In this document: positions 18,601 through 41,171 of the stretch, in pieces | How the letters are laid out: every line of letters starts with the position of its first letter | How positions within the stretch are numbered: position 1 is the stretch's first letter | DNA from: Macrostomum lignano | Lineage: Eukaryota | NCBI GenBank assembly: GCA_002269645.1 | Contig: NIVC01000490.1 | Coordinates: 1 to 41,171, forward strand | Direction: 5' to 3' | Length of the DNA stretch: 41,171 nucleotides | Notes under the pieces: model-generated | Database searches by the model: none | Told to the model about the DNA's origin: nothing | What the model saw: the letters and a program-made list of their open reading frames with translations, nothing else | Made by a program: the position numbers and the translations under genes

Positions 18601-21600
18601 TGTCTTGTATAGAAGCCAGATTATCAATAAATTTACTTATCAGGCGTAAGGTCTTGCAGAATGTGATTTTGCTTCCAGGTCCAAGTGAAGCGGATTTATC
18701 TGCATGAATCTCTACAGCATTGATGTTTCGCATTTCGAAGGCTGATTTTGCTATGAGTTCCTGAGCACAGATTCTCACTTCAGCAGTGCTTACTTCATCG
18801 TAGCTGCCCACTAAGGAATCCTCAAGCACAACGCCATACGGACATTCTACAGTCGTGTCTTCAAAAATCAACCTATCAACTTTTCTTACTAGCAGTCGCG
18901 CTTGATTCAGCTCGAGTTTGCTGGACTCCCAGATTAACTTCTTGACAGACTGGACCACCATCAGCTCTGATACAAAAGTTCTCGCTGAGTTCATTGCTAG
19001 CAGCTCACCGTTATCAGCATTCACTAGAAGCGTTCCAACTTTAATCTCACAATTTGGGTGCATTTTCATCTCGTTTTCAAATTCAATCAGCAGCAGGGGT
19101 GGCTTTTGTTCTTCGAACTGAGTGATTTCACCACTTATTTTAACGGTTTTTGCGTTCAATATTAGTTTGCCAGAGTTTACTGAAGTTTCACTTCCAAATC
19201 GAAAGCTGCCGCAGCAGTTTAAATTTTCTGTTTCAATCACCATTGCTGGATTTTCTCCAGCCATGCATGAAGTAACTGTGCCGCGAATCAGAACGCTGTC
19301 TGCCTGAATGGTTGCTTTTTCAACACTTTGGAACGCAATGGTGGCCTCTTCAGACTGTATGAACTCCTGGGCTGTAACAAGGCAATTCTTCAGCCCCACC
19401 AATTCGACAAGCCCGCTAAGGCTAAGGTCCTTGTTGCAAGTCAGAAGAAAGTCATCACAAAAACTTTGGTGGCTCGTAACAGACAGTATATCTGCTACTG
19501 ACAGTCGGTGTGCTGTCAGTTGGCTGGGCAAGTCCATCTCGACTCGAATTTCGAGCTGAAGACTGATCTCCGATCCAAGAAAAGTCTGACATTTTAACCT
19601 CGCATCTCGTTGGCCTTTTATTGTGACCTGGTAGTCATTGTGGCACAGCTCATTGTCGTTTAAGTGGCTCACAAGAAGACTGCTTACTTGCACCTGTTGC
19701 GATTTGGCCACAGTAAGATTCAAATCCATTCCAAAATCTTTGTGTGGCTGAACTATCATTGTGTGACACTGAACATTTCGACGTAGTTCAATCATCTCGG
19801 CAGCTCGCAGGTGAAGATAACTCTGATCGGGTGCGCTAACTTTACTGTGCATTATCACGGAGCCCGACAAGCACTGAAAGCTTGCGCCATTTGGTGGTAG
19901 CTTTACTTGGAGAAGCTGGTCATGAGAATTGGCTTGGACATGGAGACTCTTAGAGTTTGTCGCTACGCACACAAGTTGAGCTGCAGCGTTTACATGTCCC
20001 TCGAGGTAGCTGTTTTCATGAGAGCCCAGCCAAAAGATGAACACAGTTCCATGAGTCGATACAATGCTTCCTGCAGAATTATCAATGTCAGTGGCAACAA
20101 TCAGCGTATCCTTGTAGCACACCACGGAGCCAAAGTTAGCAAATTCATTTGCTCTGATCTGCAAATTGCCTCTTATGCACTTAAGCTTGATTTTGGGCAA
20201 AATATGAAGCCATTGGTTTGTCACTATGACAACCGAATCCAGCGCTTCAAAATCATTTGCCAGTGTACAGTCATCTTCCAAATCAATGGACAGGTGCTTT
20301 GTTCCAATTACGCTTCCCTTGTCTATAAAGCGTCGTCCTTTGATATGAAGCGTAGTTCTACACTCTTCCTTTGTCCTAGAGAGGGTCAGTCTTCCGTGAT
20401 GAGTAAACTGATCTGCGATAAAAATGGTAACTTCATCAGCTGCAAAGTCCCACTCAGATCCATTGTGCGTATTTGCTTTGTGTAGCACGATTTCAATGCT
20501 TTTAGGATTTGGTGCTTCGTAGTTTGACTCTGGCGGGCACACCAGTCTGCTGCTCGAACTGAATTCGGCTGTTGCTGCTGGAATGACAACTCCCATGCAC
20601 TGGATGCAGCTATCCACTTCTACATCAACCCCGGTTTGGTTGAAGGAAGAGTGCACAATGAAGGGCCCTTTTGTTATCAGCACATTTTCTCGAAATGAGA
20701 TGTGACCACCTGGACCACAAATTACACTAAGCACGGATTCTTCCGCTTTAACATTAGCCTGGATGGTGAGTTTATCGAAGGCTTTGACTGTAACTCTGTA
20801 GCCGCTGATGCTGCCGCAAGCTTGATCGCTTGCTCTCCTAGTCGTTATTTGAACCTCCGCTTCACTTTCCACAGCTGAACAAAGCGCTGCCTTTTTATCT
20901 TGAATAAAATTTCCGACATCGAGGCTGAGAATTTGGAAAGTGTTGTGTATGCGTTGATAGTTTTCCAAAGTGTTTGCCACCGACAAAGTGCCACCGTTCA
21001 CCAGCCAAAGGTCTGCTTTCTTGTGAACTTTGCAGTTTCCAACTTCCAAAGCAAAAAAGTCTTCGACAATGACTCTTCCAAATACTTCAAAATTTTCACG
21101 GCAGTATCCGCTTATGGACCCGCTTTTCCACACTGACAGCCGCTCGACATAAGCATCTCCTTTGATCTTGAGGTGAACTTTGGCCCCTATGAGCTGACCT
21201 AGATTGTCAAAATTCTGCTTGACAACGCAGAAAATGGATTCTGACTTGAAAATTCCCTTACTGTTTTCTGCCCATTCCAGACGCGCTCGATTGGCATCCA
21301 GTCTGGCTCGTTCCTGTTTGACCAGATTCGCATCGCTGCTCAGATCATTCACTGACTGCCGCAGCGTTGCGCTCGACCTTCGACCCCGGTTATTTCTATA
21401 GCTGGGATCGGCTCCTGAGCAAAGTAGCTGGTTTAGTTCTCCGGAATGACTGGTACATCTTGTGAGTAGTTGTTCATCCAGTCTTCTGCCTTCTCCATCC
21501 AATGTTAATTCAAGCTCTTGGTTTGTCATGCTTTCCCGGTGGTACTTTGCCACGCGAGCTGCTGCCTCTTGTACAGACTCTGGAGATCGTACATTTTGAG

Positions 21601-22129
21601 CGAAAACTTTTAGCTTGGTCTTGGCGAAGACAAGCCCAACATTCGTTATGCTACCAGTGAGGCTTAAAGTTACTTCTTCTGCTCTTTGCTCTTCTTTTCG
21701 CGAGTATCCGATAGTTCCTTCCATGCTAATTTCTGCGGTTCCATCCACTTCGATTGTAACACTGCTGTCAAACTGCTTTTTAAAACGACTGTCCTGCAGG
21801 GGCAGGAGGGAGCCTGATACTTTAAGATTGCATGCTTCACGACTTCTTGACTCGCATATCAGCTTCGAACACTGTACAATCGCCCCTACATCTATGAAAA
21901 CTGAGGGAGCAACTAGTGTAAGTGTGCTGCCCTGTAGTTTATTAGAAGTGATGTGGATCTCTCCTTCCGACTCGATTGTTAACCGGTTGAACTTCTGGCT
22001 TCGGTCAGCAACTGAGACCCTGGATGCAGCAATCCTGATGCATTCGTTCATTTTCATACTCATTATTAATACAAACAGTTCTTTCGATTGTTTGTCAACT
22101 TTGACCTGGCAGCTCCACCTCTCAGGGCT
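12644..22129 (-). CDS. Giant (~3,150 aa) single-exon protein, predicted long beta-helix with filamentous haemagglutinin-like repeats; function unknown
   Basis: 9.5-kb uninterrupted frame. Short alternating-hydrophobic strands throughout, plus FHA-like motifs (SITNVGLVFA, NFDNLGQL, FANFGSV, ATDIDNSAGSIVSTHG, FIDNLASI). The track's start at 22174 is a TTG. A strong acceptor (ttattctttcAG) precedes 22129 and the first ATG is at 22063. Confidence 0.85.
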   Translation of the reverse strand, partial: SPERWSCQVKVDKQSKELFVLIMSMKMNECIRIAASRVSVADRSQKFNRLTIESEGEIHITSNKLQGSTLTLVAPSVFIDVGAIVQCSKLICESRSREACNLKVSGSLLPLQDSRFKKQFDSSVTIEVDGTAEISMEGTIGYSRKEEQRAEEVTLSLTGSITNVGLVFAKTKLKVFAQNVRSPESVQEAAARVAKYHRESMTNQELELTLDGEGRRLDEQLLTRCTSHSGELNQLLCSGADPSYRNNRGRRSSATLRQSVNDLSSDANLVKQERARLDANRARLEWAENSKGIFKSESIFCVVKQNFDNLGQLIGAKVHLKIKGDAYVERLSVWKSGSISGYCRENFEVFGRVIVEDFFALEVGNCKVHKKADLWLVNGGTLSVANTLENYQRIHNTFQILSLDVGNFIQDKKAALCSAVESEAEVQITTRRASDQACGSISGYRVTVKAFDKLTIQANVKAEESVLSVICGPGGHISFRENVLITKGPFIVHSSFNQTGVDVEVDSCIQCMGVVIPAATAEFSSSSRLVCPPESNYEAPNPKSIEIVLHKANTHNGSEWDFAADEVTIFIADQFTHHGRLTLSRTKEECRTTLHIKGRRFIDKGSVIGTKHLSIDLEDDCTLANDFEALDSVVIVTNQWLHILPKIKLKCIRGNLQIRANEFANFGSVVCYKDTLIVATDIDNSAGSIVSTHGTVFIFWLGSHENSYLEGHVNAAAQLVCVATNSKSLHVQANSHDQLLQVKLPPNGASFQCLSGSVIMHSKVSAPDQSYLHLRAAEMIELRRNVQCHTMIVQPHKDFGMDLNLTVAKSQQVQVSSLLVSHLNDNELCHNDYQVTIKGQRDARLKCQTFLGSEISLQLEIRVEMDLPSQLTAHRLSVADILSVTSHQSFCDDFLLTCNKDLSLSGLVELVGLKNCLVTAQEFIQSEEATIAFQSVEKATIQADSVLIRGTVTSCMAGENPAMVIETENLNCCGSFRFGSETSVNSGKLILNAKTVKISGEITQFEEQKPPLLLIEFENEMKMHPNCEIKVGTLLVNADNGELLAMNSARTFVSELMVVQSVKKLIWESSKLELNQARLLVRKVDRLIFEDTTVECPYGVVLEDSLVGSYDEVSTAEVRICAQELIAKSAFEMRNINAVEIHADKSASLGPGSKITFCKTLRLISKFIDNLASIQDTGSIACEAENALVVGSLKCRSKLSISASKLIYNQSQLSAEDVILNGKVLMHLCKRDDGDDASKFTPANVQAKNSLKMKSCALITIFSKLCSPTISTRSILHFGFAEQICTDIESGSDELKASIKDLEKVLQPDSSNQMCDALKIMVLDAAQAFRENHNRCAQVVSAASKMVLQTVTETSGLQRNSSVASLLAGFTASIKEGFSETEEDLSDYWKKLYKCDWTPLKSNGLFERSRWLCLIGPTRIEAQKVMYDCESWRSDGSMAVKDGALIKSVCAQLWSDQPTTWLVCTGDVHIFAEKLLKTRSLTSEEASVTLRSAQIEAYGIWSARNLLMAAEESLGIDEILGETEVWITAKNARVGNLASERLCLLSESASIVNSTSTEILEAIISNELDAKLVFAPKTYLIASDSFVSIKLESSKLENCTILSDSCQILKCSFTNLNCNVTDELLVRTSHVFEKFLAKTKRHFSIGEFCFLKDLHCTAEEKISIQQVEAQHLTVSCSDLQIDDLLAAALKIVKAENITITDSSVTDLEVRSSNMTKIAGSSTKTCLGTATCTSNNFEIANVYVTETLVLCSFKAKVSETMLSKLWFICPKEGELSIEQSMSDEFVAFCSDLTSKQNKFTRLAFQGKQLKFFETETEKMHVDAYSGFLLSKSSVFGDLVAWSETAHAFASLLGSMKLRGCSVGATVRMCEVQKDIEISCRMLRMSDSSGKSLKILSRGNTILERLMIDEGCDVASLGHVTVSDCQLDHFKLLADSSVNVERLITNKSTVVIAKGHTTLKQLLVGSLHVDIGNSYLNIHDLNSVGLSWLNSGRLCISDCQSQSDMKLTVSIAARVAQCFSRTLEVTGTTNGIVGVRLLAVKSEEINITDALFASVSTTEIVNSVVFKRISGDVRIKSNCSLHNLTVQSNGILAISDSEIGQVTAVCRRCCITSTFGLQTSLFIHAKETMAAPAVLLNLVSRIDSVELAGKNIALTECVFKNGTIQADAQFTMTGCNIRDTACIQSAEVRVADTDATRIQVSASNICEIKSLRYAEVQLKTKKLQLQGCCVQKVEAKVETTAQVTACEFIESLLLKADVTMVCGVLVQDRMQVQTRVLDLDGRNSKQESEGFTKELLVMSGPETCAEGTAVNIKNIRTMQLQVNSRPKTVVLSHVTIENTALLTGNDIKLENVETSMLILSAEPTQCKISSGFIDSLKGSVENMSILTSSLKHTELSCDSFVLAGETDIQQELVLKVNKLEIKTAKVGSAWICPKGSKASATATIEGFSTELTFKIDEFNKISISECCGFKGEVTLKCHTFDAMKLCRFDQNVSIDCERCEMENPEFSASLTLRSHDGFIHGARVSNRCSLFVSGSLSLSDCQLNGAVKSFGKQGLLKLENSKCRSFHLEGSEVEINGADTSERSWISAASKVHIRKCLISDEVAVSARVVSIDGEISFIKSLRIDCASELHIGSLKVDSSLQVTSSGRIRVNSGITAASFLIRSESELPDFGAAKDCQFDELQIDCPSFDKENLVRFINAKTFECVRNVLKIKTRKPIKLSGNEFRERELALKFGITLAAPSISFRNICVASLKQICLIAESGGIDLQEYTIQAKQITLDEKTQGMRNNGRYTEHLGFEGSITTKATSPFASISSAYTRHNEAFSLSSPTQMNPKTTQASLAKELEERLLTPWELNALTNVEERISNDPRFSETAVEFHETPEPISSLTEAAKSPTEAPQPISSLTEAAKSPTEAPQPFSSLTEAAKSLTEAPEPSSSIDFSSDAATACKFLPVSAKESDQEWWQFDSECRSIKAEIQAKLEAVPSQINCDFEVPDYKNTEQQLKLLVDKATTDFNREFEAPQRTLDGHQSWRDFDNSCSVCTRSDPEDFHEARKAMQSCITDCRDILPVSIREKLPDQLPQEPESYINRVHPLIRVSQFRVTIGPSRVTEIDGKIELANFCSAGTTPRPAFLRPVDRQPEYKAKEFNIRVPDYYSHHYWDLK
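13332..13490 (-). repeat. Coding tandem repeat, 51 bp / 17 aa (PISSLTEAAKSPTEAPQ) x3
   Basis: Three near-identical 51-bp units read directly. Confidence 0.95.
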
Positions 22130-24489
22130 CTGAAAGAATAATTTCAAATTAATATTATTTGAGTAGTAAGACAATGAAAATATATTTTAACTTCTGCTGA
22201 TACGATTTATTTACTGATTGTCACGCACGACGCGCGTATATAACTACGTGTAGGGGGTTGTTATGCCTTCCAAGTTTAATTGACTTCAGTCATTACTAGC
22301 AATTGTCCCACCTAATTTTATTTGTTATAGTTTTAAGGCCCACTTACACCACCATCAAATACATGTATTGTATTGCATAGTCACAAAATTTTAAGTTAAA
22401 GTGGTTCGAAATTTCATGTAGTCGAAAAGTCTAGCTAGTCACCTTCGGCTTAAAATTTAAAAGATCTACTTAACGATGGGAAATTATATCTGAACAAGTC
22501 AACGGCTTATGAAATTTACTATCTTCAACTACGTTAAAGTTCGAGCTCAGAAGCGCTCTTATAACCGTTCTATGATCTATACTTGTTGGACCAGCCAGAT
22601 ATGCTAAACCTCATTCAAACTATATCTTGTCGAGGAACTGAAAAATCTTCTCTCAATCAGCTAATTAAAACCATGGCGCCTTTTAAAGCTTAGCTAGGGT
22701 TCAGAACTTAAAACGGAACTATAAATACAAACAGAGATCAAAATGTCTCAGCGGTCGGGCTGATGGGTTAGGCGCTGATGGAATGGGCCCAGGTTAGGGA
22801 GCTCCCCGCCTCCCTGTCTCTCCGGCCCAGCACCTTCACCATTTACTCTTTATAAGCTATTATTAGGATTATAGCACACTTAGAAATATTTAAAGTTTCC
22901 AGTGGTCAACAAGTGGCAGCTTTATTTTAACTCAAGGCATAACTCTCCTCTCTTTCCTCACCAGCCTAAGCTAGAGTCTTGTGAGCTAAAGTCAACTCAA
23001 TTTTTCGGAGACAAAAAATCACAATGATCAACCACGATCACTAGCCTGGCTGAGAAACCGTTGTATAGCAGTCAAATTTCAGTCCCCCTCGACTCCTAGC
23101 ATGTACGTACGAATACACATGTACCGTACATGTACATCAATCCCCGAGGGAAAGAGAGTGACAGTACACACAAAAAACCCATGCAGCAACATAGTTCTAC
23201 CGAGTTGACAAACCCCATTCAATGTAATTCCTTTAATTCTCCCCTGTCATGCCCCTGGGGAATTCCACGTTTTTATTCTGGGCTCCTATGTGTTCTGGCT
23301 ATTGCTACTCTTAATAAATGCACTCATTCTGATGTATTCGTCCTCCTTTTCACGCTGCCTGCCCAGCGCCCACGCAATAGCCGCATCATTACTGTAATTG
23401 CGTGCATATATTATTGTTCCCATTGATCCCCCTACTATTAGCGATCAGTAACGCGTATATTGCTTCCCGATTTTCTCTCACCCACGGAATGATCGCGCAA
23501 CACCCTTGTTCTCACCCTGATGGATATCGAGCAAAACCCACTGGCCCTAATCCACCAGGGCGCGAGTGACCTGCGACGTGTCTGTGCCCAGAGACCTTTT
23601 TTAATTTAAGGGCTTTTTAATTCTTCCGCGGATCCGAAAGAAAGAGGCGGATACTATCCAAACTATATTGAAAGCTAATTTATGTGTTCTTTTCTTACGA
23701 GAGTATGTCTTAAATTCCTATTTTGATCATTTCTCAATTTGCTTCAGTAGTTTGCATTAGATACCGAATTTTTATGGGGGCGCATTTTCTACCGGATGTC
23801 ATTTTATTTGGCAAGGTGATCCAGCACCAGAGTTGTCGAAGCTACTGATTAGGGGGCGCCCATGCATATACTTTTAATTGCCAGCCACAGGAGGCCCTCC
23901 TTCCCCACCCGCTAAGTTACTAATGTATGGAATACTCTACTACAAGAATTATTTTTAGTCGGAGGGCTGAATTAGCGCGCACAAGCAGAAGCGCGCGCAG
24001 ACACAAGCGCGCTAACACAAGCGCGCAGACACTTTTTACGGCAAGAAAAGTCGTAAATATTGTAGTACTCTGCACCCCCCTTCTCGGCACGTTGGTTTTA
24101 ACTCCTGTATACACTACATCGTAGATGCACACTTACTCTTGAGCAATTAGCTACAGAGCTTTGAGCTCAAAAATATAATCGGATCCTACGCCAACGTCGG
24201 GGCTGTAGGCGTCTGGTTCAGGTAAAATTCTGTCTCTCGCGTCAGTCACAACAAATATATTGTTGGACGAAATGCAAAGACGAGCAATCAAAAGTAAAGT
24301 AAAAAATCCGAATAAAGCAAAGTAAAACTACCGGCACAAAGCGCAGTATGAAACCAGATGCTTTGATGAAAATAGATTTCCATTCATTGGAGGTTAGGAA
24401 ACAGGAATGGATTCAAGAAAATTGGTTGCCGCTGCAAAGTAGTGGGTTGCCACAACGAAGGCCGAAGGCCGGCGGATGCTCGGATACCA

Positions 24490-29200: not shown

Positions 29201-31511
29201 GGTGGGGGGGGTTCTTAGCCTTAGGATTGTGGGAAAGAATTCTATTTCTAATCTGATTCGAGTGTACTTTATTGATACTCTAGTAGCGTTTATTACAGAA
29301 TGTCTTACAGGGAGGCAGCACGCCTGATAGACTGGGAGTCTAGGGGATAGGCAAAACGCCTGGTAGACAGTAAGTTTAGGGAGATAGGCCGAACGCTTAA
29401 TGGACAGTACGTCTAAAAACTACGCCTAAATCGGACAATACGCCCTTGAGGTTGGAAGAAGGCAGAATGCCTGTACTGGGCACTGGGCAGCACGCTCTTG
29501 GGGAAGAGAGAGAGAGAGAGACAACACGCCTCTATTGAACAGCACTGTTGTACCTTGGGAGAAAGAGGCAAAATCTTCCCAAGTAAGTGATAATGACAAA
29601 TATGCTATTTTTAGAACAAAAATATCAGACACTCGGATCGAGGCAAGTATTAGGCAAGAGCCCAGGAGCAAGAAGTTGGTCTTTCACTTGTGTTTTTCGT
29701 CGGTATATTTAATAAGAAAATGAAGATGGCGGTTTCTTTAAAACAAACTACAGTATTTATACGTGTCTTTTAAATACAATAGGTGCAAAATATCAGTTTT
29801 TATCAGTGCGCTAATAAAATATGGTTAGAAAATATATTTTTTCAAGGAGATAGAAAATAATGCTAACCACCTATATAATCACCTAATCACCTAGTAATCA
29901 TAGTAATCACCAGAGATCCAAAGCCACTCTGAGTCTAAGGACCTCGATGACAACATGTACTTTTAAAATTTCACCGATGTTTAGCCGACGTAAAATGACG
30001 TTATCCGTCGATGTAACGTGAGAGTGCATATTTTATACTCTCGGATTGTTTACAGTCTAGTCGGATTGCTGTACGGGTGTGACGTTGCTAGTTTAAAGTG
30101 GTCCCGCAAAAGGGCCGTTGGACTACAAATTTCCTTACAATTTCTCATTTAATATTCTCCAATCCTGTATTCTCACGTTTACTTGTAGTAGCGCCCAACG
30201 AATCTGTATCAATTGCTAAATCACTCCGTACTTTGTAAGCCTTGTGTACGGCTGTAGGGTCTCGCGCGATCGATAATTTCTGTTTCTTGTTTTTTCCTCG
30301 ACAGCCAATGATAACTCTCCGCATATATTATGTTAACCCTCCTGCGCTCCTTTATTAACCCCGCCTAGCGGCGGGCTGGGGTTTTTTTCACTCCCTTCGC
30401 CACTTTCGCTCTTTCGCTCTCTCGTTCTCTCGTCCTCGTGCCTCCTTATCTCTCGCCACGGCTCCACTCCGTCTGGGCCAGACTGTCTACGCACTCTTGC
30501 TACACTGTGTACTGCCACGGGCCGACGCCCAATCTCGCCGCTTTGTTTGTTTGCCTACTTGTTACTCACAGCCATCACTTGCTACTCGGCTCCATCCCAA
30601 TTATCATCATCTACTCAACTTCCATCTATACGACTAGATTACATCAACCCATTGTTGCAGCCGCCAGTGCCCCATAACGTCATAAGCTTCTGTATTAATA
30701 TTAAACATTGATAATTATAAACCAGTTGGCGTCTTTTGTTATCTACCGCCATTGCCAAGTGCTACCGCTACAAAATCTACTCTGCCATTGTTGAGTTCAC
30801 CATCCTTTTTGGGACTAATAACGTCAGCACTCTCGTCAAACGGCCCTTTTGAGGGCTATAGCCACTACTACGCCAATAACGTGACACGGGTATAATGAAA
30901 TTTGGGATATTGCCTCGCAAAGTAGCGGCCTAACTAATTCAGAACAAATGTCAGGTATGATCATAGCTATTGGTTTTACTCGGTAGTTCACGCACTTCAC
31001 GCTCGCACTCGTAATATAGTTTTATGCTTATTTCTCTTAGATAAGAAGGTGGATAGATCTAAAGATAGTTACCGCGAATTTAAAATAGTTTTACATGTAT
31101 ACGTACAAAAACACCGCTTTTAAGGCTTTGAACTTTCCGTAACAATGTCCACCAAGCTTGTGTGGTTTTTAATCCGATTCTTCTTATTTTTCTTCCTAGA
31201 TTCGTCTCCTAAATCCAATGGCATCACATTAATTTCGGATTATTCAGTGTTCGAGTGCTGTTGATTGCGACAGTAAAAAAAATTTGTCTGGCTCTCTGAC
31301 CCTCTTGGTAATCTCTAAATTTGACAAGAGCAAATCTAATAATTTGTTATTAGAAATGAGAGCATTTCTCTAAGCACTACGATCGTAGCATAGAACTCAA
31401 TTTTAAGTACTCGTAATCGACCATTTCCTGAAAAATCTCAGCACTTGAGACTGTCTAAGTGCTAATAATTAATTCGTGCTAAGTACTTTGAGCTTAATTC
31501 TAAATTGCAGA

Positions 31512-34500
31512 ATGGGCAATACTGGAAGCAAACTGAGCAACAATACTGATGAGCATTGGAGCGTAGCTGCAGAATACAAGGTCGTTGGATGGAGCGCTGG
31601 CGATGGCATCATTCATGTGGACCCTTGGAACTCAACACATTATGATTTCAAGGGTTTTCCTGTTAACATCTATTTTAAACACAAGACACACAGTTTATCA
31701 GATACGATTAGTGACTCAGATATGAAATCATGGTGCAACGGTATCAGAAACAAGGACTGGAAGCTGCATTCACCATCAGAAGGCATCATCCATCTGGAAT
31801 ATAATGGAGGATATGTTGCAAACTACAAATACGAAACCAGATCGATGTTCGAGGCGAGAATGCACAGAGAACGAGAGCAGAGAATGGAGAGAGAGCGCAG
31901 AGGACAAGAGCAGAGAATGGAGAGAGAGCGCCGAGGACAAGAGCAGAGAATGGAGAGAGAGCGCAGAGGACAAGAGCAGAGAATGGAGAGAGAGCGCAGA
32001 GAAAAAGAGCAGAGAATGGAGAGAGAGCGCAGAGAAAAAGAGCAGAGAATGGAGAGAGAGCGCCGAGAAAAAGAGCAGAGAATGGAGAGAGAGCGCAGAG
32101 AAAAAGTTCAGAGAATGCAAGGGGCGCTACAGCAGCTGAAGCAGGGTGACAGAGAGCAGTCACTTTTTGATCAAAGGAGGGCGGAACAGCAGATGGCTCG
32201 ACAAAGTGCGATGCAAACTGAAAACATACAAAAGTGGAAAAGCTTGAATGCTGAGCGAGACAGGGCTTTGGTGAACTTCAACCATAAAACTAAAGATTTC
32301 AGCAGAAGATGCGAGGCGACGAGGCAAGAGAGATCGGCCAAACACGAGGCGAGTAAAAGGCAAACTGAGAAAGATCGAGCAGAACACTTTGCCAGACTGC
32401 AGAAGCAGGCAAGAGACAGAACAGAAAGCGAACAGCTATCTTTGGCTGATGAACAGGAGCAGGCAAATGCTATTCGCAAACAGAGACACGATGAGTTTCA
32501 TCGTCAAAAATTAAAAGTCACCTCAGAAACTAGCGAAAAATTTAGCAGTCTCAACCAGGAAGCTCAGGAAACAAGAGCTCGTTTGAGAGCTCAGTTTGAA
32601 GAGAGAAAAAGTACTTTTCAGGAACAGATGAAGCGAAAGAAGGAGGAGATGCAGCAGCAAAGCTCGGAGATGCAAGACAGGCTGCAGTTGCAGAAAAATC
32701 AGCTGGAAATTGGCAAAGAAGAACTTCACCGCGAAATGGCTGAAAGGGAGGCTGAGATTGCCCGAAAAATAGAAGAGCAGCGGCGGCATCGAGCGGAGAA
32801 GCAACGGGAGTCTGAGAACCTGAAGAAAACAGAGCAGTTCAAGCGACAAATATTGATAGAGCTGGAGAGAGAGAGAGCCAAAGCTATGCGCAGACAATTT
32901 AAGAGTGTTAGCTACTCCATTCAGCACGTTCGTGGGAAGAGCGCCAAAGGCTATTCTAACCCTGCAGTAAGCGAAGCATCCGAAGTGATGCTCAGAGACC
33001 AGCTTGAAGAAAATGTTGAAGATGCTTTGACGAAATTTCTAGGCAGTCTGTCAGGTGCTATCGAGGATGATTCCAATCAGGAACTGTCAGTAGCAGCTAA
33101 TGTCAAAACAATTTCTGCAAAGGACGCTTTAGATTTATTTAAGCGTGTCTGGAAATCAGAAGGTCATCCATTTGGAAAGCAGCCAACATCTAGCCAATTG
33201 TCTCTCCTACAACTATTGGATGAAAAATTCGCTCAACAGTGTTTAGATGCGGCTAACAAAGTTTTCCGAGAGATCTGCTTTCCGAGTTTAGAACTCGACT
33301 TGGTCAGCTATGGTCTGCTGGTTTTTGTCCTGCACAGCGAAAAATCCCAAGATATCAAGCACGAAGAAGACTTCAGTGCTCTCCGTCAGCAACTCAGCGA
33401 CACAAGAATTGCACTGGCGCATATGAGAAAGCTCACTAGTGAAACAGCCTATAATGAGCTCAGTCCTGTCACTGAAAGGCTGCTCCAGCTGCTAGTTGTG
33501 GCTGAAGATGTTGTGCGACTTTGGCCGATTCAACAAGACCCTGCTGCTGGCTTAAAGAGGCTCAGAGTCGTACTGGCAACGATGCTGAGGCATGCTGGTG
33601 TGTCGCAGTATTTGGATGAAAAATCCAACACCGAATGTGTCGTAGAGCTCATAACATCGATGCAGCATTGGGACCCTGTTAGCATGCTCAAGCTGATGGA
33701 ATTTATACATACAAGTTGCACTGAGCCCGATCAGGTGAGAGAATTCGTGAAGATGATGGTGTTGAGCCGCGGCGACCCCAGATCTCTTCCGAGTCCTCGC
33801 GAGGCGATTACGGAAACTTATATTGCGAGCCTAAAAAAAGATCAAGCATCACAGAAAACACTTGACCAGCTTCTCGATGAACTGAAGAAGACAGGGCAGT
33901 TCGACGAGGGTCAACTTTCAGAACTTGCTGACGTAGTAAGAAAAGTTTTCACATATTTTGATTCGTCTGGGTTCGATAAAGCATTGCAGAAACTGAAAAT
34001 ATGGAAACGTGGTAAGGAATCGCCACTGCACAAAATTCTGATTGATCTCTGTAAGGCAGTGCTGAAATGCAAGGGATATCTCCCAAGACATACACAAGTA
34101 TTCAGTACTGCAGCCCTCCTAAACGCTTTTAAAAACAAAACAAGTGGGCAAGTATTACAGATCCTGACTGGTGAAGGTAAATCCTGCATTGTCGCAATGT
34201 CTGCTGTAGGATTGGTGCGTCTTGGACAAAAGTCTGTTGATGTCGTGGCTCCGTCAGAAGTTTTGGCTGCGAGAGACTGTAAGGAATGGAAAGATTTCTA
34301 TAAAATATGCGATGTTCGAGTTGACTGCAACATTGAGCACGAAAATCCTAAAAAATGCTATGAATCGTGCATAGTGTATGGCACAGTCTCTTCTTTCGCG
34401 GGCGACACATTGCGGCATGAGTTCCAGTTCAAAGACATCCGCGGCTCACGAGGCTTTGATTCAATAATCGTGGATGAAGTTGACTCTCTGCTGCTGGACC

Positions 34501-36308
34501 AAGGTGTGCAGCTGACATATCTGGCTCAGGACGCAGGTGACATGAAAATGCTGGATCCAATTTTCGCTACTATCTTTAGAGCCACTATGGGCTGCCACGT
34601 TCTCAACACAGCGCACGGAGGTGAGATGGTGGCAGAGCAACAAATGACTTTTCTCTACCTCATAAAAGAGTTCGTCTCGTCGGATGAAGAGTTCAGCACT
34701 TTGGTCGAGCAACTTGATCTCAAACAGTTAATTAGTTCAGAGGAGAAACAGAGCTTCTTGGCTCAAAATGCCGAACCAGTGGATTTGTCAAACTTTGATA
34801 TTAAAAGGACGATTCAGGTTCTTGAAGTTTCTGGAGAAGTTTTGCAAAATTTTCCATCGTATACAATTTATGCATTTAGAAATGCTGAAATCGAACCAGT
34901 GCGGCTTTGCCAAGATAGCTCATTGGATCTTTTAGTCCAAGATGGTGGAGTCTGCAATTTGCTTTTTGAAAATATCGATGACTTCAAAACACGAAAGAAG
35001 GAAGATATCTGGTCGAGAATAGACTACAGTACAACAATACTAGACCCGAAAGACGACACCAAAAAGAAACATGAAGAGGCCCAGCTGCCCATTCCATCGC
35101 ATTTAAAGCAGTTCATAGATGACATGCTGGATGTCTGGATCAACAGTGCCCTCACTGCAGGAGCTCTGCAACCCGGTAGAGACTACCTGCTTCAGGGTGG
35201 GGACGCTGTTCCAGTAGACTACAAGCACACAGGAGTGGTGCAGGAGAACATGAGATGGAGCGATGGGCTGCAGCAGTTTCTGCAGTTAAAACACAGCCTG
35301 CAAATGCGGCCTCTAGGATTGGAAACAAACTTCCTGTCAAACTTGGCCTTCTTCCGTCGATATGGCAAATCCATGTTCGGTGTGTCTGGAACTCTCGGAG
35401 AAGAGCATGAGAAAAAGTTCATGCGGGAAACTTACAAAGTGCAACTGAACTACATTCCTCCGTACAGGGAGCGCCGGCTTGTGGAGAACCCGGGCATTGT
35501 GGCAGAAACCAAGTCAGAGTGCATCACGAAAATTTGCCAACTAGTTACACAGGAGAGAAATCGGCCCAGCTTGATCGTGTGCGAGGATATCAACAGTGCC
35601 GACCTCATTTTCGAAGAGGTGGCTCGCCGTTGTCAAGGAGTCAAGACAAAAAAGTACGTCAAGAATGAGGACACAAAAGATGAACTTCAGGTGGGTCCCG
35701 GTGATGTTATTGTGGCCACGAATCTGGCAGGCAGGGGCACGGATGTGAAAGTGAGTGACGACGCGGAGACAGCGGGAGGTCTACACGTTCTCGTCACATT
35801 CCTGCCCCTGAATCAGCGCGTTGAGGAGCAAGTGTTCGGCCGCAGTGGTCGCAAGGGCCAGCGGGGTTCAGCGACTTTGCTGCTAAGCAGAGAGGGCCTC
35901 AGTGCCTGCTTTTCAGACTGTGACTCTGTCGAAGAAATGAAGCAGGTGAGACGAGAGGCCAGCTTGCAGGAACTGAAGAATCATGAGGAGTTCGCGCTGC
36001 CGGAAGTTGAGTTCAAGGAGAATCTTTTCAAGTGTATCAGTCATTTGCTATCGGAGTATTATCATCAGATAAAGAAACCTCCCAGCACTGGTACAGAGCT
36101 AGAAAAGCGTTGGTCAGAGACGGACCTAAAATTAAAAATGGATCATTTAAAAGAGATTTGGGGCATGCATCTCAAAAAAACACTCTGTCACATTACTGAT
36201 TTCAGTAGAGAGAGAACAGCTCAGTGCATTGGAGAAGTTGAGAAAATGTTCCAGGAAGCAAAATCTAATGTCGAATCCGAGTGTTCATTGAGTCCTTTTC
36301 AGCACTGA
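31512..36308 (+). CDS. Giant SecA-family (SecA DEAD-like / SF2) ATPase protein, N-terminal intact part; metazoan SecA-like protein, not a canonical translocase
   Basis: ATG at 31512 directly after an acceptor (ttgcAG). SecA motifs in order: PRHTQ, QILTGEGKS, SEVLAARD, VYGTVSSFAGDTLR, IIVDEVDSLLLD, DYKHTG..QENMRWSDGLQQFLQLKH, FFRRY...GVSGT, VATNLAGRGTD, GGLHV, RVEEQVFGRSGRKGQRGS. Motor spans ~34060-35890. Confidence 0.93.
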   Translation: MGNTGSKLSNNTDEHWSVAAEYKVVGWSAGDGIIHVDPWNSTHYDFKGFPVNIYFKHKTHSLSDTISDSDMKSWCNGIRNKDWKLHSPSEGIIHLEYNGGYVANYKYETRSMFEARMHREREQRMERERRGQEQRMERERRGQEQRMERERRGQEQRMERERREKEQRMERERREKEQRMERERREKEQRMERERREKVQRMQGALQQLKQGDREQSLFDQRRAEQQMARQSAMQTENIQKWKSLNAERDRALVNFNHKTKDFSRRCEATRQERSAKHEASKRQTEKDRAEHFARLQKQARDRTESEQLSLADEQEQANAIRKQRHDEFHRQKLKVTSETSEKFSSLNQEAQETRARLRAQFEERKSTFQEQMKRKKEEMQQQSSEMQDRLQLQKNQLEIGKEELHREMAEREAEIARKIEEQRRHRAEKQRESENLKKTEQFKRQILIELERERAKAMRRQFKSVSYSIQHVRGKSAKGYSNPAVSEASEVMLRDQLEENVEDALTKFLGSLSGAIEDDSNQELSVAANVKTISAKDALDLFKRVWKSEGHPFGKQPTSSQLSLLQLLDEKFAQQCLDAANKVFREICFPSLELDLVSYGLLVFVLHSEKSQDIKHEEDFSALRQQLSDTRIALAHMRKLTSETAYNELSPVTERLLQLLVVAEDVVRLWPIQQDPAAGLKRLRVVLATMLRHAGVSQYLDEKSNTECVVELITSMQHWDPVSMLKLMEFIHTSCTEPDQVREFVKMMVLSRGDPRSLPSPREAITETYIASLKKDQASQKTLDQLLDELKKTGQFDEGQLSELADVVRKVFTYFDSSGFDKALQKLKIWKRGKESPLHKILIDLCKAVLKCKGYLPRHTQVFSTAALLNAFKNKTSGQVLQILTGEGKSCIVAMSAVGLVRLGQKSVDVVAPSEVLAARDCKEWKDFYKICDVRVDCNIEHENPKKCYESCIVYGTVSSFAGDTLRHEFQFKDIRGSRGFDSIIVDEVDSLLLDQGVQLTYLAQDAGDMKMLDPIFATIFRATMGCHVLNTAHGGEMVAEQQMTFLYLIKEFVSSDEEFSTLVEQLDLKQLISSEEKQSFLAQNAEPVDLSNFDIKRTIQVLEVSGEVLQNFPSYTIYAFRNAEIEPVRLCQDSSLDLLVQDGGVCNLLFENIDDFKTRKKEDIWSRIDYSTTILDPKDDTKKKHEEAQLPIPSHLKQFIDDMLDVWINSALTAGALQPGRDYLLQGGDAVPVDYKHTGVVQENMRWSDGLQQFLQLKHSLQMRPLGLETNFLSNLAFFRRYGKSMFGVSGTLGEEHEKKFMRETYKVQLNYIPPYRERRLVENPGIVAETKSECITKICQLVTQERNRPSLIVCEDINSADLIFEEVARRCQGVKTKKYVKNEDTKDELQVGPGDVIVATNLAGRGTDVKVSDDAETAGGLHVLVTFLPLNQRVEEQVFGRSGRKGQRGSATLLLSREGLSACFSDCDSVEEMKQVRREASLQELKNHEEFALPEVEFKENLFKCISHLLSEYYHQIKKPPSTGTELEKRWSETDLKLKMDHLKEIWGMHLKKTLCHITDFSRERTAQCIGEVEKMFQEAKSNVESECSLSPFQH
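31875..32105 (+). repeat. Coding 33-bp / 11-aa repeat EQRMERERR(GQ/EK) x7
   Basis: Seven units read directly; E/R-rich helical segment. Confidence 0.95.
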
Positions 36309-39300
36309 AGTTCGCAGAGAAAAGTGTAAGGCACGAAGATTTCGAACGAGCCATTGATCTTTACACAAAAGCTATAAATATGAACAGCTCATGGTCGTCT
36401 ATCGCGTACTACAACAGAGCATACGCAAAAATAATGAAAGGCAACTGTGATATCAGAGAAGTGATGGATGACTTGAAGATGCAAAAGCTCGGATTGCAGA
36501 AACCTGGCTGGCCCATGCCACGTGGACGCAGCTGTACTCTGGCGCAAGAATCCAGCAGGAAAATGCAAGCGATAATGACTGTGAGGAGGAGGCTAAGAAG
36601 GAAACACCCAAAGACCAAGCGAATAAACAAGTTAAGGAAGAAGCCAGCAAGATGTTCGAAGTGAAACTGCAAACCCTCAGTTCCGTCAATGCATGGCTCG
36701 AATAAGGATAATCAGCAATTATAAAACCCAAATAGAAAATGCCTGGAAAAGCTGGAAGAGCACAGAAGAGCTGGTGATAAAATCATTGCTGTCAGCACTT
36801 GCATTAAGGAGATTGAGAAGGAACCAGACAGCATTACACTTGACGAGCTCAAGTCTCTGTACCATCTGGGTCATGTAAGATTTTTTGATGTACAAAAGAA
36901 GCCTTCATATGCATTAGCATTTGTGGCATTTTCGGTGCTTTGAGATTGCGCTTGGCACTGCGCTGTGTCTTGTGGTGGTGAATGTTGGAATTCATTTTAT
37001 CAATGAGGCATTAATGATATAATGGCAGGTGTGGGATGATTCAGGGTGATTTTAATTTAAAAGCCTGGCTAAAAAAAAAGCCAAGAATATTGGTGTCAGC
37101 CTACTGACTTTTGGATTTGAAAAGTCGTCAACTATCTTAAAATCTTCGGAAATTCGAAGCTGTTGCGCAAAACGTTAATGCAGCTGGGAGTAATTTACAC
37201 GAAAGCCGCATCAGTACTGAACAAAGTGATTGGACAAAAAGCTGTTAAGTTTATTAAGAACATAATGAGCAATCCAATTGTACAGAAAGTGACCGATTAC
37301 GCGATAAGTGTAGCTCAAAGGAAACTGCTCGATAGTTAATTGAAAAGTTAAAGCAGGACGTCCAAAGACGACGTTAAAGAGAAGTGCCTCTGAGGCTGAA
37401 AGTGGAAAACTTCATGACATTGTTCTCCGACTGACTGCTCCTCTCTGCTTAGTAAAGGACCAGGAGACGAGTAAAATCGATTTATATGATTTTTCCACTC
37501 TAACTCATTCTCAAACCAATAATATTTTACAGGCTCTTACCGCTATAGCACACGAAGCAACAGATGAATTAATGTCTGATGTAAAAATACGGCCAAAGTA
37601 ATCGAAGCAATAATTCACGATTGACTGTTCTAAAAGACGAGTTCTGCAGACTCTTCAAAGGTATTCTGTCTTTTGTAAGACTGGCATCAGTGGCAGTGGA
37701 TTCGGCAGCAATAGCAAGCATGCAAAAACATTAACAGCCTGTAGGCAATACTGTCGAGTTGCATGGACAAACGATTGCTGAAGAGAATGGAAAATAAAAT
37801 TTGACCAGACCATTGACATCCGAAGCGAAAAGCTGCAGAGAAAAGAATGCATCAAACCACTCTGTAAAGCAATTCGAAAAGAGCTGGAGCAGCGCATCAT
37901 TGAATGCGTCATTGTAATACTGGAAGAGCACATCCGTAAAAACCTAGATGGCATTGTGGAAAACAGCATTGAACAAGCAAAAAAATTCATTGGAAAAACA
38001 TTTAAAACCGCACATAAAGAAAATATAGCTAACAAAAAGATACCATCCATCAAAAATAAAAATATTGAAAAATCCGAAAAACCTGGAACCAAGAAATTCC
38101 TAAAGAAAACTAAACTCACTGCTACAGACTCCGGTGTGGAGCTAACTAATGCAGACAAAAAACTAGCGGTCAAGGCTGGCGACTCTGGAGTGAGTGTGGC
38201 CGCTCAGCACAAAGACATGGCTCTCGGCGTGTCTCACGGATCGGACGGTTCTACAGAAGTGGCCGCGAGCAAGGCGACAGCAAACTAGCGGTCAAGGCTG
38301 GCGACTCTGGAGTGAGTGTGGCCGCTCAGCACAAAGACATGCTCTCGGCGTGTCTCACGGATCGGACGGTTCTACAGAAGTGGCCGCGAGCAAGGGCGAC
38401 AGCAAACTAGCGGTCAAGGCTGGCGACTCTGGAGTGAGTGTGGCCGCTCAGCACAAAGACATGGCTCTCGGCGTGTCTCACGGATCGGACGGTTCTACAG
38501 AAGTGGCCGCGAGCAAGGGCGACAGCAAACTAGCGGTCAAGGCTGGCGACTCTGGAGTGAGTGTGGCCGCTCAGCACAAAGACATGGCTCTCGGCGTGTC
38601 TCACGGATCGGACGGTTCTACAGAAGTGCCGCGAGCAAGGGCGACAGCAAACTAGCGGTCAAGGCTGGCGACTCTGGAGTGAGTGTGGCCGCTCAGCACA
38701 AAGACATGGCTCTCGGCGTGTCTCACGGATCGGACGTTCTACAGAAGTGGCCGCGAGCAAGGGCGACAGCAAACTAGCGGTCAAGGCTGGCGACTCTGGA
38801 GTGAGTGTGGCCGCTCAGCACAAAGACATGCTCTCGGCGTGTCTCACGGATCGGACAGTTCTACAGAAGTGCCGCGAGCAAGGGCGACAGCAAACTAGCG
38901 GTCAAGGCTGGCGACTCTGGAGTGAGTGTGGCCGCTCAGCACAAAGACATGGCTCTCGGCGTGTCTCACGGATCGGACGGTTCTACAGAAGTGGCCGCGA
39001 GCAAGGGCGACAGCAAACTAGCGGTCAAGGCTGGCGACTCTGGAGTGAGTGTGGCCGCTCAGCACAAAGACATCGCTCTCGGCGTGTCTCACGGATCGGA
39101 CAGTTCTACAGAAGTGGCCGCGAGCAAGGGCGACAGCAAACTAGCGGTCAGGCTGGCGACTCTGGAGTGAGTGTGGCCGCTCAGCACAAAGACATCGCTC
39201 TCGGCGTGTCTCACGGATCGGACAGTTCTACAGAAGTGGCCGCGAGCAAGGGCGACAGCAAACTAGCGGTCAAGGCTGGCGACTCTGGAGTGAGTGTGGC

Positions 39301-39781
39301 CGCTCAGCACAAAGACATGGCTCTCGGCGTGTCTCACGGATCGGACGGTTCTACAGAAGTGCCGCGAGCAAGGGCGACAGCAAACTAGCGGTCAAGGCTG
39401 GCGACTCTGGAGTGAGTGTGGCCGCTCAGCACAAAGACATCGCTCTCGGCGTGTCTCACGGATCGGACGGTTCTACAGAAGTGGCCGCCAGCAAGGCGAC
39501 AGCAAACTAGCGGTCAAGGCTGGCGACTCTGGAGTGAGTGTGGCCGCTCAGCACAAAGACATCGCTCTCGGCGTGTCTCACGGATCGGACGGTTCTACAG
39601 AAGTGGCCGCCAGCAAGGCGACAGCAAACTAGCGGTCAAGGCTGGCGACTCTGGAGTGAGTGTGGCCGCTCAGCACAAAGACATCGCTCTCGGCGTGTCT
39701 CACGGATCGGACAGTTCTACAGAAGTGGCCGCCAGCAAGGGCGACAGCAAACTAGCGGTCAAGGCTGGTGAATCTCTATAA
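36281..39781 (+). CDS. Frameshift-broken C-terminal part of the SecA-like protein: TPR, Gly-rich hydrophobic segment, helical region, 41-aa repeat tail ending AVKAGESL*
   Basis: TPR-like FERAIDLYTKAINMNSSWSSIAYYNRAYAKI overlaps the main ORF end. Successive frames join into coherent protein-like sequence that runs into the repeat array and stops at TAA 39779-39781. Disruptions may be assembly errors or pseudogenisation. Confidence 0.65.
38155..39768 (+). repeat. Coding tandem array, 123-bp / 41-aa unit GDSKLAVKAGDSGVSVAAQHKD(M/I)ALGVSHGSD(G/S)STEVAASK, ~13 copies
   Basis: Near-identical units read directly. Many copies lack 1-2 bases at scattered positions. Confidence 0.95.
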
Positions 39782-40207
39782 GGACTACCATTTTGACGTG
39801 TAATGACGGTAATATTTTGGCTATACGATTTAATCGAAAAGGACATTTTTCAGTGACGTCCTTTGACTTCCGTGTGGTTGAATACTTTTGCGGACTTCAG
39901 AGTGTCGTTGTCTAAGCGTTCGTTTGAAATGCAGTGTAGATGAAAAAAAGTGTTGAAATTAGTATTTATAGTTTCTAGTATAGCAAGTAAATCATTTAGG
40001 TCATTTTATCCACCTACATGTGCTTGTATCGTTTGAATTAAAAACTTTTACAAGAATACAAGTACCACTAAATTGATGCAGCTTCGTTTAGGAGTTATTT
40101 GGTTGATTTGGGGCTACTAGTTTTTATTTTATTTATAAAATAATATTAACTATTCGCATTGTAATCGTGTAATTCGTGGTTTTTCTATGGGGTAAATTAT
40201 GGATTTT

Positions 40208-41171
40208 CCGCTCAGCACAAAGACATGGATCTCGGCGTGTCTCACGGATCGGACGGTTCTACAGAAGTGGCCGCGAGCAAGCGACAGCAAACTAGCGGTC
40301 AAGGCTGGCGACTCTGGAGTGAGTGTGGCCGCTCAGCACAAAGACATGCTCTCGCGTGTCTCACGGATCGGACGTTCTACAGAAGTAGCCGCGAGCAAGG
40401 GCGACAGCAAACTAGCGGTCAAGGCTGGCGACTCTGGAGTGAGTGTGGCCGCTCAGCACAAAGACATGGCTCTCGCGTGTCTCACGATCGGACGTTCTAC
40501 AGAAGTGGCCGCGAGCAAGGGCGACAGCAAACTAGCGGTCAAGGCTGGCGACTCTGGAGTGAGTGTGGCCGCTCAGCACAAAGACATGGCTCTCGGTGTC
40601 ACGGATCGGACGGTTCTACAGAAGTGGCCGCGAGCAAGGGCGACAGCAAACTAGCGGTCAAGGCTGGCGACTCTGGAGTGAGTGTGGCCGCTCAGCACAA
40701 AGACATGGCTCTCGGCGTGTCTCACGGATCGGACGGTTCTACAGAAGTAGGAGCAAGGGCGACAGCAAACTAGCGGTCAAGGCTGGCGACTCTGAGTGAG
40801 TGTGCCGCTCAGCACAAAGACATGCTCTCGCGTGTCTCATGGATCGGACGTTCTACAGAAGTGGCCGCGAGCAAGGGCGACAGCAAACTAGCGGTCAAGG
40901 CTGGCGACTCTGGAGTGAGTGTGGCCGCTCAGCACAAAGACATGCTCTCGGCGTGTCTCACGGATCGGACGTTCTACAGAAGTAGCCGCGAGCAAGGGCG
41001 ACAGCAAACTAGCGGTCAAGGCTGGCGACTCTGGAGTGAGTGTGGCCGCTCAGCACAAAGACATCGGCTCTCGCGTGTCTCACGGATCGACGGTTCTACA
41101 GAAGTGGCCGCGAGCAAGGGCGACAGCAAACTAGCGGTCAAGGCTGGCGACTCTGGAGTGAGTGTGGCCGC
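40208..41171 (+). repeat. Second array of the same 123-bp unit, ~8 copies, running off the window end
   Basis: Starts abruptly mid-unit (CCGCTCAGCACAAAGAC) after ~430 bp of AT-rich sequence, with more small deletions than the first array. Confidence 0.93.

Follow-up and report, generated by a model that had tools for sequence, protein, structure and literature searches.

A 41,171-bp stretch of the genome of Macrostomum lignano (contig NIVC01000490.1 of assembly GCA_002269645.1, positions 1 to 41,171; hereafter the window) carries on its forward strand a gene whose sequence places it, as a divergent member, in a large and uncharacterised family of giant proteins that are encoded without introns and have a SecA-like motor. 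SecA is the textbook secretion motor of bacteria and plastids; it spends ATP on driving unfolded chains through a channel in the membrane and is presumed to play no part in animal cells. Animals have Sec61, and no SecA pathway is known from them. In the assembled sequence, the reading frame is broken many times after position 36281. We consider these breaks probable errors of the assembly consensus, in which case the gene is intact and has one open reading frame (ORF) at 31512-39781 that encodes ~2,764 amino acids (aa). Because of comparisons across the family, the best available model is one in which the motor delivers its own C-terminal tail. As an explanation of the whole, an intact giant SecA-family protein with delivery in cis is the one we favor, and we hold it with slightly less than even confidence.

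Sequence and predicted fold both identify the motor. The five SecA motifs quoted in an earlier, sequence-only reading of the window are all present (residues 886-1449; table 1) and occupy invariant columns in an alignment of 54 sequences. The motor ORF matches the Pfam families SecA_DEAD (PF07517; E = 7.5e-24, 84.9 bits vs. a cut-off of 24.6) and P-loop_SecA (E = 1.1e-7, 32.2 bits vs. a cut-off of 27), as well as DEAD and Helicase_C. All 24 chains matched by sequence in the PDB are SecA or SecA2 (E ≤ 1.6e-33). An AlphaFold (AF2) model of residues 701-1598, built on the 54-sequence alignment, is confident (predicted local distance difference test [pLDDT] of 83.6, predicted template modeling score of 0.82), and the top 36 structures found with it by Foldseek are SecA or SecA2 (E = 5e-30 to 4e-15), followed by UvrB (7e-8). 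The model has an insertion at the position of the preprotein-binding domain (PPXD) of SecA. The Pfam family for this domain, SecA_PP_bind, has no match at E < 0.01 in the window protein, and the PDB alignments begin inside the PPXD; relatives match the family with E-values of 1e-3 to 3e-6. In the model, the helices that follow the second nucleotide-binding domain (NBD2) appear to resemble the scaffold helix and two-helix finger of SecA. By its sequence and predicted fold, the motor is therefore a genuine ATPase of the SecA superfamily, and none of its catalytic motifs is missing, confirming what had been proposed from the letters alone.

Relative to bacterial SecA and SecA2, the window protein is alike in its two-lobed DEAD motor, its SecA-type motifs (TGEGKS, DEVD, ATNLAGRGTD, and GRSGRKG), the insertion at the PPXD position, and the long helix after NBD2. 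It differs in scoring far under the cut-offs of the NCBIfam equivalog models for SecA and SecA2 (at best 143 bits vs. 725-1493, with only profile positions ~283-557 matched) and in being without a wing, a C-terminal linker, and a zinc/SecB-binding domain. Among the homologs, PF07516 and PF02810 are matched by bacterial ones only. The window protein also has ~800 additional N-terminal and ~1,200 additional C-terminal residues, is eukaryotic and intronless, and implies no SecYEG partner. PADLOC returned no defense-system match for the window protein.

The family is large and occurs in animals and bacteria. A first protein search returned ~200 homologs, the best of which are 31-36% identical to the window protein over the motor. 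Ray-finned fishes contribute most of them, under the automated name 'protein translocase subunit SecA-like'; others are from Polypterus and Pleurodeles. Long homologs (1,770-1,890 aa) have a coiled coil, a helical region, the motor, a TPR-like motif, a hairpin (...LISEGISDMISG...FSWASWAISKAISIGLSL...), and a long tail. A layout of MG start, coiled coil, motor, TPR-like segment, hairpin, and tail is kept in bichir, gar, catfish, salamanders, brittle star, and rotifer, so that the multidomain architecture originally read from the window is conserved in long relatives from several animal groups. A profile of the hairpin module, run against 1.84 billion representative proteins, matched 972 at E ≤ 1e-3 and 584 at E ≤ 1e-10. 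The matched proteins are mostly 1,400-6,231 aa in length and include those of Lepisosteus, Lissotriton, the brittle star Amphiura, the rotifer Brachionus, and a Bacteroidota metagenome-assembled genome. SecA_DEAD is present in all 24 of the members scanned with Pfam. A full-text literature search found no paper describing the animal family, for which databases carry only the automated name 'SecA-like'.

The vertebrate 'SecA-like' genes belong to the same family as the window gene, and long forms in Polypterus, Lepisosteus, Ameiurus, Pleurodeles, and Lissotriton share its coiled coil, TPR-like segment, hairpin, and tail. The window protein differs in branching beside, not clearly within, the vertebrate proteins and in having a 41-aa repeat tail of its own, whereas most fish forms are ~1,100-1,200 aa and have no hairpin. 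In a neighbor-joining tree of the motor (207 sequences and 546 columns; bootstrap of 100 replicates on 69 taxa), the window motor branches as sister to, or only just within, a clade of 147 members that has vertebrates, Amphiura, and a protein with a SNAD4 deaminase tail. The grouping of the window with animals is separate from canonical SecA in 100 of 100 bootstrap replicates and from members in bacterial contexts in 98 of 100. A comparison with Wolbachia phages, proposed along with the sequence-only reading, revealed no link; a search of the phage collection returned canonical SecA only, in bacterial-like records, and no Wolbachia-phage relative.

The N-terminal half of the window protein is uninterrupted. 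The frame is free of stops from 31476 to 36308 and encodes 1,598 aa when counted from the first ATG at 31512, where the predicted N-terminal MGNTGSK is indeed encoded. An acceptor-like TTGCAG is immediately 5' of this start. In 18 family members, the window protein included, the start has the form MGxxx[STAGCN], which we count in favor of a predicted membrane tether. An E/R/Q-rich coiled coil follows as claimed, but it extends for ~400 aa rather than ~600 aa (residues ~119-520, to nucleotide ~33070; E 18%, R 17%, and Q 12%).

The C-terminal half is conserved in sequence and broken in frame. The continuous ORF of ~2,700 aa that had been described does not exist in the assembly; at least 22 corrections across 36282-39781 are necessary to keep a single frame, that is, the frame changes at least 22 times before the stop codon is reached. 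Frameshift-aware alignment shows that 36290-37700 is homologous, in alternating frames, to the C-terminal module of long homologs (TPR-like motif, Gly-rich hairpin, and helical tail). A family hidden Markov model of this module matches pieces of the window with E-values of 3e-18, 3e-6, and 1e-5, and the corrected module matches the family with a blastp E-value of 8e-20. In a homology-guided reconstruction, the order of frames over the 17 segments of the unique C-terminal part is 2,1,0,2,1,0,2,1,0,2,1,0,2,0,1,0,2, and 14 of the 16 junctions are single-base deletions. Junctions that could be resolved to the base are all in short homopolymers (TT ~36289, CC ~36902, GG ~36948, GG 37007-8, GGG 37033-5, and A9 37071-9). 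Amino-acid similarity to relatives that are 30% identical is retained over every frame junction.

Two features described earlier within this part are present with qualifications. There is one TPR-like helix pair, which scores under Pfam thresholds in the window protein (TPR_BSK1_C, E = 1.8e-5; TPR_1, E = 0.006); some relatives match TPR_2 (E = 2e-5). The Gly-rich hydrophobic segment is homologous to the family hairpin but is scattered over three frames. Three of eight family members match DUF4225 in the hairpin (best E = 6e-4, ~19 bits vs. a Pfam cut-off of 25.9). This identity was dropped because the matches are below threshold and in hydrophobic sequence prone to chance matches. Relative to DUF4225 as a domain of antibacterial effectors of the type VI secretion system (PMC9765294), the family hairpin matches the core weakly and sub-threshold, and there is no type VI secretion context.

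The tail of the window protein is a tandem array of near-identical 41-aa units. Tandem Repeats Finder reported a period of 122 bp because most copies miss one base, while unit-by-unit alignment gives 123 bp (41 aa), which is intact in three copies. The repeat frame runs on from the unique coding sequence via a degenerate half-copy (...TATDSGVELTNADK KLAVKAGDSG...), and this continuity supports the repeat being coding. A noncoding satellite of 122 bp is ruled out by the 123-bp unit with scattered one-base deletions. An AT-rich spacer supplies the stop codon and the array then resumes past it. The C-terminus may therefore differ from 39781, and the real 3' end of the gene, or a neighboring copy, may lie past the end of the window. 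The spacer was also considered as an intron (GT at 39769 and AG at 40217), which is ruled out since it would remove 29 nt of the unit and break the frame. Separately, each repeat unit holds a splice-donor-like GTGAGT and an acceptor-like CCGCTCAG, ~20 nt apart; these signals are probably coincidental, though they could allow splicing that skips units.

The tail had been called long and beta-rich. The repeats are there, and the only hint of beta structure is a marginal periodic match to 41-residue WD40 blades. Relative to the repetitive WD40 propeller of Nostoc (Npun_R6612; PDB 2ymu), the window repeat has the same 41-residue blade period, near-identical copies, and a shared pattern of H..GV..DG.T..AS..KL. 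The full-sequence E-value of 5e-7 is inflated by summation over repeats; per-domain independent E-values (i-E) are 6-20 and the pairwise BLASTP E-value is 0.014. The window repeat differs in having few large hydrophobic residues, and a Pfam scan of the tail repeats has no WD40 match. No other family member that was compared has a tail with this array.

Across the family, tails are polymorphic and, by their sequences, often toxin- or effector-like. When 127 tails were compared over their last 300 residues, they formed 30 unrelated clusters, 24 of which are singletons. The tail of P0173, encoded on a 751-kb contig of eukaryote-like ORF density, is an AID/APOBEC-like deaminase of type SNAD4 (E = 7.5e-9), which is reported only from sponges (PMC5889660). 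P0244 has Ntox46 (E = 1.1e-7), P0215 has a Peptidase_M91-like HExxH domain (E = 7.5e-5), and the tail of P0167 has an OTU-like peptidase, the sole case in which Pfam confirms OTU. By eye, an OTU-like catalytic motif (GH..., NxCL[YF]) is visible just before the terminal domain in the tails of P0199, P0264, P0174, P0194, and P0215, and it recalls the releasing peptidases of polymorphic toxins. ApoL (E = 8e-17), a Ulp1/RickCE-type peptidase, and ILEI are each present somewhere in the sequence of one member.

The locus of P0244 (L003 10001-15250; Logan SRR28385527) combines a SecA-like motor, a hairpin, and Ntox46 in clearly bacterial, mobile-element-like surroundings. It is flanked by an abutting 514-aa ORF upstream and by a 145-aa ORF with multiple transmembrane segments and a helix-turn-helix gene downstream. 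On a related contig, L004, a gene of the same type is near a TraG-type coupling protein. By sequence, the P0244 locus resembles a toxin-immunity cassette carried by a mobile element, with the 145-aa ORF being immunity-like. The gene of P0199, on a bacterial contig of 23% GC, is followed by a 136-aa ORF. The translocator/effector interpretation of the sequence-only reading thus finds support at the level of the family, in its tails and in a bacterial locus resembling a toxin with its immunity gene, but not in the tail of the window protein, which has no toxin match.

The reference system for swappable C-terminal toxin domains is the bacterial polymorphic toxin systems (Zhang et al. 2012, PMC3482391), and the Aravind group has briefly mentioned SecA-like modules, both of giant actinobacterial toxins (PMC8195603) and of Amoebophilus effectors (PMC3482391). 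At the level of the family, the likeness is in a conserved N-terminal and central 'delivery' part joined to swappable C-terminal Ntox46, AID/APOBEC-like deaminase, M91-like, and OTU-like domains, and in the small multi-transmembrane ORF that follows bacterial member P0244. Differences are that the window protein is eukaryote-encoded, without a recognizable toxin domain or an evident immunity gene, and that a built-in SecA-like motor with hairpin delivery is not an established trafficking mode.

Under the model we favor, an N-myristoyl group and the coiled coil would keep the motor on the cytosolic side of a membrane. From there it would drive its own C-terminal tail into or across the membrane, through or alongside the hydrophobic hairpin, and the tail would act as an effector. 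The whole would be a polymorphic-toxin-like system working in cis, for defense or for conflict between organisms. In the window protein, the tail consists of at least 13 nearly identical 41-aa repeats, which possibly fold as a WD40-like propeller, and it may bind or sense rather than kill. The translocation step itself, in which the motor pushes its own tail across the membrane, is argued by analogy and is doubtful when taken singly.

Several observations weigh against this model. The window protein has no Pfam match to the helical wing/scaffold (SecA_SW) or to the SEC-C zinc motif, and profile scans of its own tail found no recognizable toxin domain. Many fish homologs (~1,100-1,200 aa) are without the hairpin and tail, so the motor can evidently work alone. 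An AlphaFold model of the family C-terminal module (P0091, 6-sequence alignment) has a mean pLDDT of 51.5 and is unusable, and pore formation by the hairpin is therefore conjecture. If the hairpin crosses the membrane twice, motor and tail would end up on one and the same side of it. Near the window gene, where small eukaryotic genes cannot be called reliably, no gene stands out as an immunity-like partner. The second repeat array lies outside the ORF. Lastly, the first frame break is a sharp boundary whether the breaks are assembly errors or the gene is truncated.

The main rival is a sensor and switch. Here, the SecA-like ATPase would be a STAND/NLR-like switch, the repeats a WD40-like sensing propeller, and the hairpin or the N-terminal part an executioner that causes, for example, membrane damage. 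The period and motif pattern shared with the 41-residue blades of 2ymu are consistent with such a protein, as are the short fish forms without hairpin and tail and the pore-forming ApoL domain of one member. Near-identical WD40 arrays are characteristic of fast-evolving recognition modules, as in fungal HET-type and cyanobacterial STAND proteins. Nevertheless, the WD40 match is marginal (i-E of 6-20, pairwise E of 0.014, and no Pfam match), the ATPase resembles SecA in particular, having an insertion where SecA has its PPXD, and relatives match SecA_PP_bind, and toxin domains are at the C-terminal end of family members, like the cargo of polymorphic toxins. We consider the sensor and switch unlikely, though a serious competitor to delivery in cis.

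Another possibility is that the gene is truncated. A real end near 36282 would yield a motor-only protein of 1,598 aa and leave the hairpin region and repeats as a neutral relic. The contrast between at least 22 breaks downstream and an intact 4.8 kb upstream is what truncation predicts, motor-only relatives of ~1,100-1,200 aa exist in fishes, and a second, degraded repeat array is downstream. However, the type of damage is not that expected of a relic. Under neutral decay, substitutions should far exceed indels and the indels should vary in length, whereas one-base deletions in homopolymers have the look of an uncorrected long-read consensus. Overall, at least 45 deletions were counted against ~3 events of other kinds, and the damage is almost wholly one-base deletions in homopolymers. 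The 20 aligned units of both arrays have 33 one-base deletions, one insertion, and 16 substitutions, 15 of which are shared variants and only one of which is private. Deletions in the arrays nearly always remove one G from GG or GGG, and copies that are not neighbors share them at the same five unit positions (GG sites). Retention of protein similarity to 30%-identical relatives at every junction is also unexpected of a relic.

The frame breaks are read as assembly errors because one-base homopolymer deletions vastly outnumber private substitutions. The density of single-base deletions is ~2.5% in the second array, at the end of the window, versus 0.75% in the first array, and no break occurs in 17 kb of ORF sequence elsewhere in the window. 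Homopolymer lengths upstream versus downstream differ in the expected direction, with counts too small for use. Taken together, truncation is improbable, somewhat more so than the sensor and switch, and an intact gene is the likely state. More generally, deletion errors in homopolymers can make an intact giant gene mimic a pseudogene and a 123-bp coding repeat mimic a 122-bp satellite, which is a warning for annotation.

Less probable still is docking of the motor on a host channel, either Sec61, the homolog of SecY, or another, with post-translational export of the tail or of partners and with the hairpin as an anchor only. The predicted fold aligns with whole SecA, SecA-SecY complexes included (5eul, 3dl8, and 3din), and a long helix and helix pair follow NBD2. 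Yet the wing, C-terminal, and SecB/zinc-binding parts of SecA are absent, and hairpin and motor are together in hundreds of proteins, bacterial ones included, which argues for a self-contained unit; we give docking only a small chance. Contamination by bacterial DNA, or mis-assembly that put an ordinary SecA into eukaryotic sequence, is effectively refuted despite the existence of bacterial members of the family, because the flanks are eukaryote-like (UCH/USP gene, long noncoding stretches, and satellites), the motor groups with members on animal chromosomes and not with canonical SecA (excluded in 100 of 100 replicates), and NCBIfam SecA models score far below their cut-offs; nesting within ordinary bacterial SecA amid bacterial flanks, which would have pointed to contamination, was not what we found.

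Table 1. Locations of features in the window (nucleotide positions, with residues of the SecA-like protein where applicable).
Feature	Position	Residues	Strand	Description or basis
UCH/USP deubiquitinase gene	4952-7705		+	Intronless, 917 aa; Pfam UCH, E = 4e-60
Orphan ORF	12644-22174		-	3,176 codons, uninterrupted; ORF scan
Intact ORF	31512-36308		+	N-terminal domain, coiled coil, helical region, SecA-like motor, post-motor helices; 1,598 codons and stop
MGNTGSK start	31512-31532		+	First ATG after upstream stop; matches N-myristoylation consensus MGxxx[STAGCN]
Small N-terminal domain	31533-31865		+	~118 aa; weak similarity to N-terminus of Ameiurus homolog P0101 (E = 0.24)
33-bp in-frame tandem repeat, 7.7 copies	31865-32117		+	EQRMERERRGQ/EK, opens the coiled coil; tandem-repeat scan
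SecA-like DEAD motor	33950-35900		+	NBD1, insertion at PPXD position, NBD2; motifs I, II, III, V, VI; Pfam, model, and PDB matches
TGEGKS	34167-34184	886-891
DEVD	34473-34484	988-991
SGT(LG)	35385-35399	1292-1296
ATNLAGRGTD	35715-35744	1402-1411
QVFGRSGRKG	35829-35858	1440-1449
Post-motor helices	35928-36281		+	49-residue helix and helix pair (model residues 773-890); predicted secondary structure
Unique C-terminal part	36282-38159		+	Homologous to family C-terminal module; 17 frame segments, 16 junctions
TPR-like helix pair	36317-36484		+	SSWSSIAYYNRAYAKI...; family motif AIAxYNxAYCTI
Gly-rich hydrophobic hairpin module	36895-37125		+	KKPFICISICGIFGALRLALGTALCLVVVNVGIHFINEGINDIMAGVGMIQGDFNLKAWLKKKAKNIGVSLLTFGF once corrected; five frame breaks, in CC, GG, GG, GGG, and A9 runs
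First repeat array	38160-39768		+	13 copies of a 123-bp (41-aa) unit, KLAVKAGDSGVSVAAQHKDMALGVSHGSDGSTEVAASKGDS; in frame with preceding unique sequence; most copies minus one G
AT-rich spacer	39769-40204			436 bp, GC 32%; cuts array at unit position 20; provides stop codon
TAA stop	39779-39781		+	In coding frame of the repeat (...KLAVKAGESL*)
Second repeat array	40205-41171		+	Same 123-bp repeat, 8 units; restarts mid-unit at position 41; continues past window end

The setting of the gene is eukaryotic. The window contains three long intronless ORFs with AT-rich noncoding DNA between them, plus micro- and minisatellites, and its UCH/USP neighbor and low gene density are those of eukaryote-type DNA. 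A tRNA scan and an Rfam scan of the window found nothing. For the SecA-like and USP proteins, exact look-ups gave no recorded match. The UCH/USP gene has a P/Q-rich N-terminus and a GC content of 56% versus ~34% in its flanks, and the sole close relative of its protein, at 83% identity, is on an mRNA-sized Logan contig (SRR30276804). The giant orphan ORF is 9 kb from the SecA-like gene and on the opposite strand. Its 3,176-aa product matches no Pfam family, and a search of 5.8 billion proteins found no homolog; from the look of its sequence, it appears beta-strand-rich and solenoid-like, and its C-terminal part has a 51-bp in-frame repeat of 3.5 copies at 13322-13499 (PISSLTEAAKSPTEAPQ). A 21-bp minisatellite (CTTTTTGCGACTTACCTAATC) of ~50 copies extends over 2422-3452, with a TC-rich tract (1545-1921) and an AG-rich tract (2033-2144) just upstream of it.

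The window gene places a SecA-type ATPase inside a giant eukaryotic protein and within a family of hundreds found across fishes, amphibians, an echinoderm, a rotifer, and bacteria. It is possible, though we would not expect it, that animals and bacteria share a single-polypeptide delivery machine composed of a SecA-derived motor, its own membrane-inserting hairpin, and a swappable effector, be it a deaminase, peptidase, toxin, or repeat array. If the motor does deliver its own tail, the family would represent a new kind of effector-delivery system and a clear case of bacterial conflict machinery reused by animals. Such a system would correspond in eukaryotes to the polymorphic toxins of bacteria, and in the cytoplasm of animals it would be the first to translocate by a SecA-type motor.

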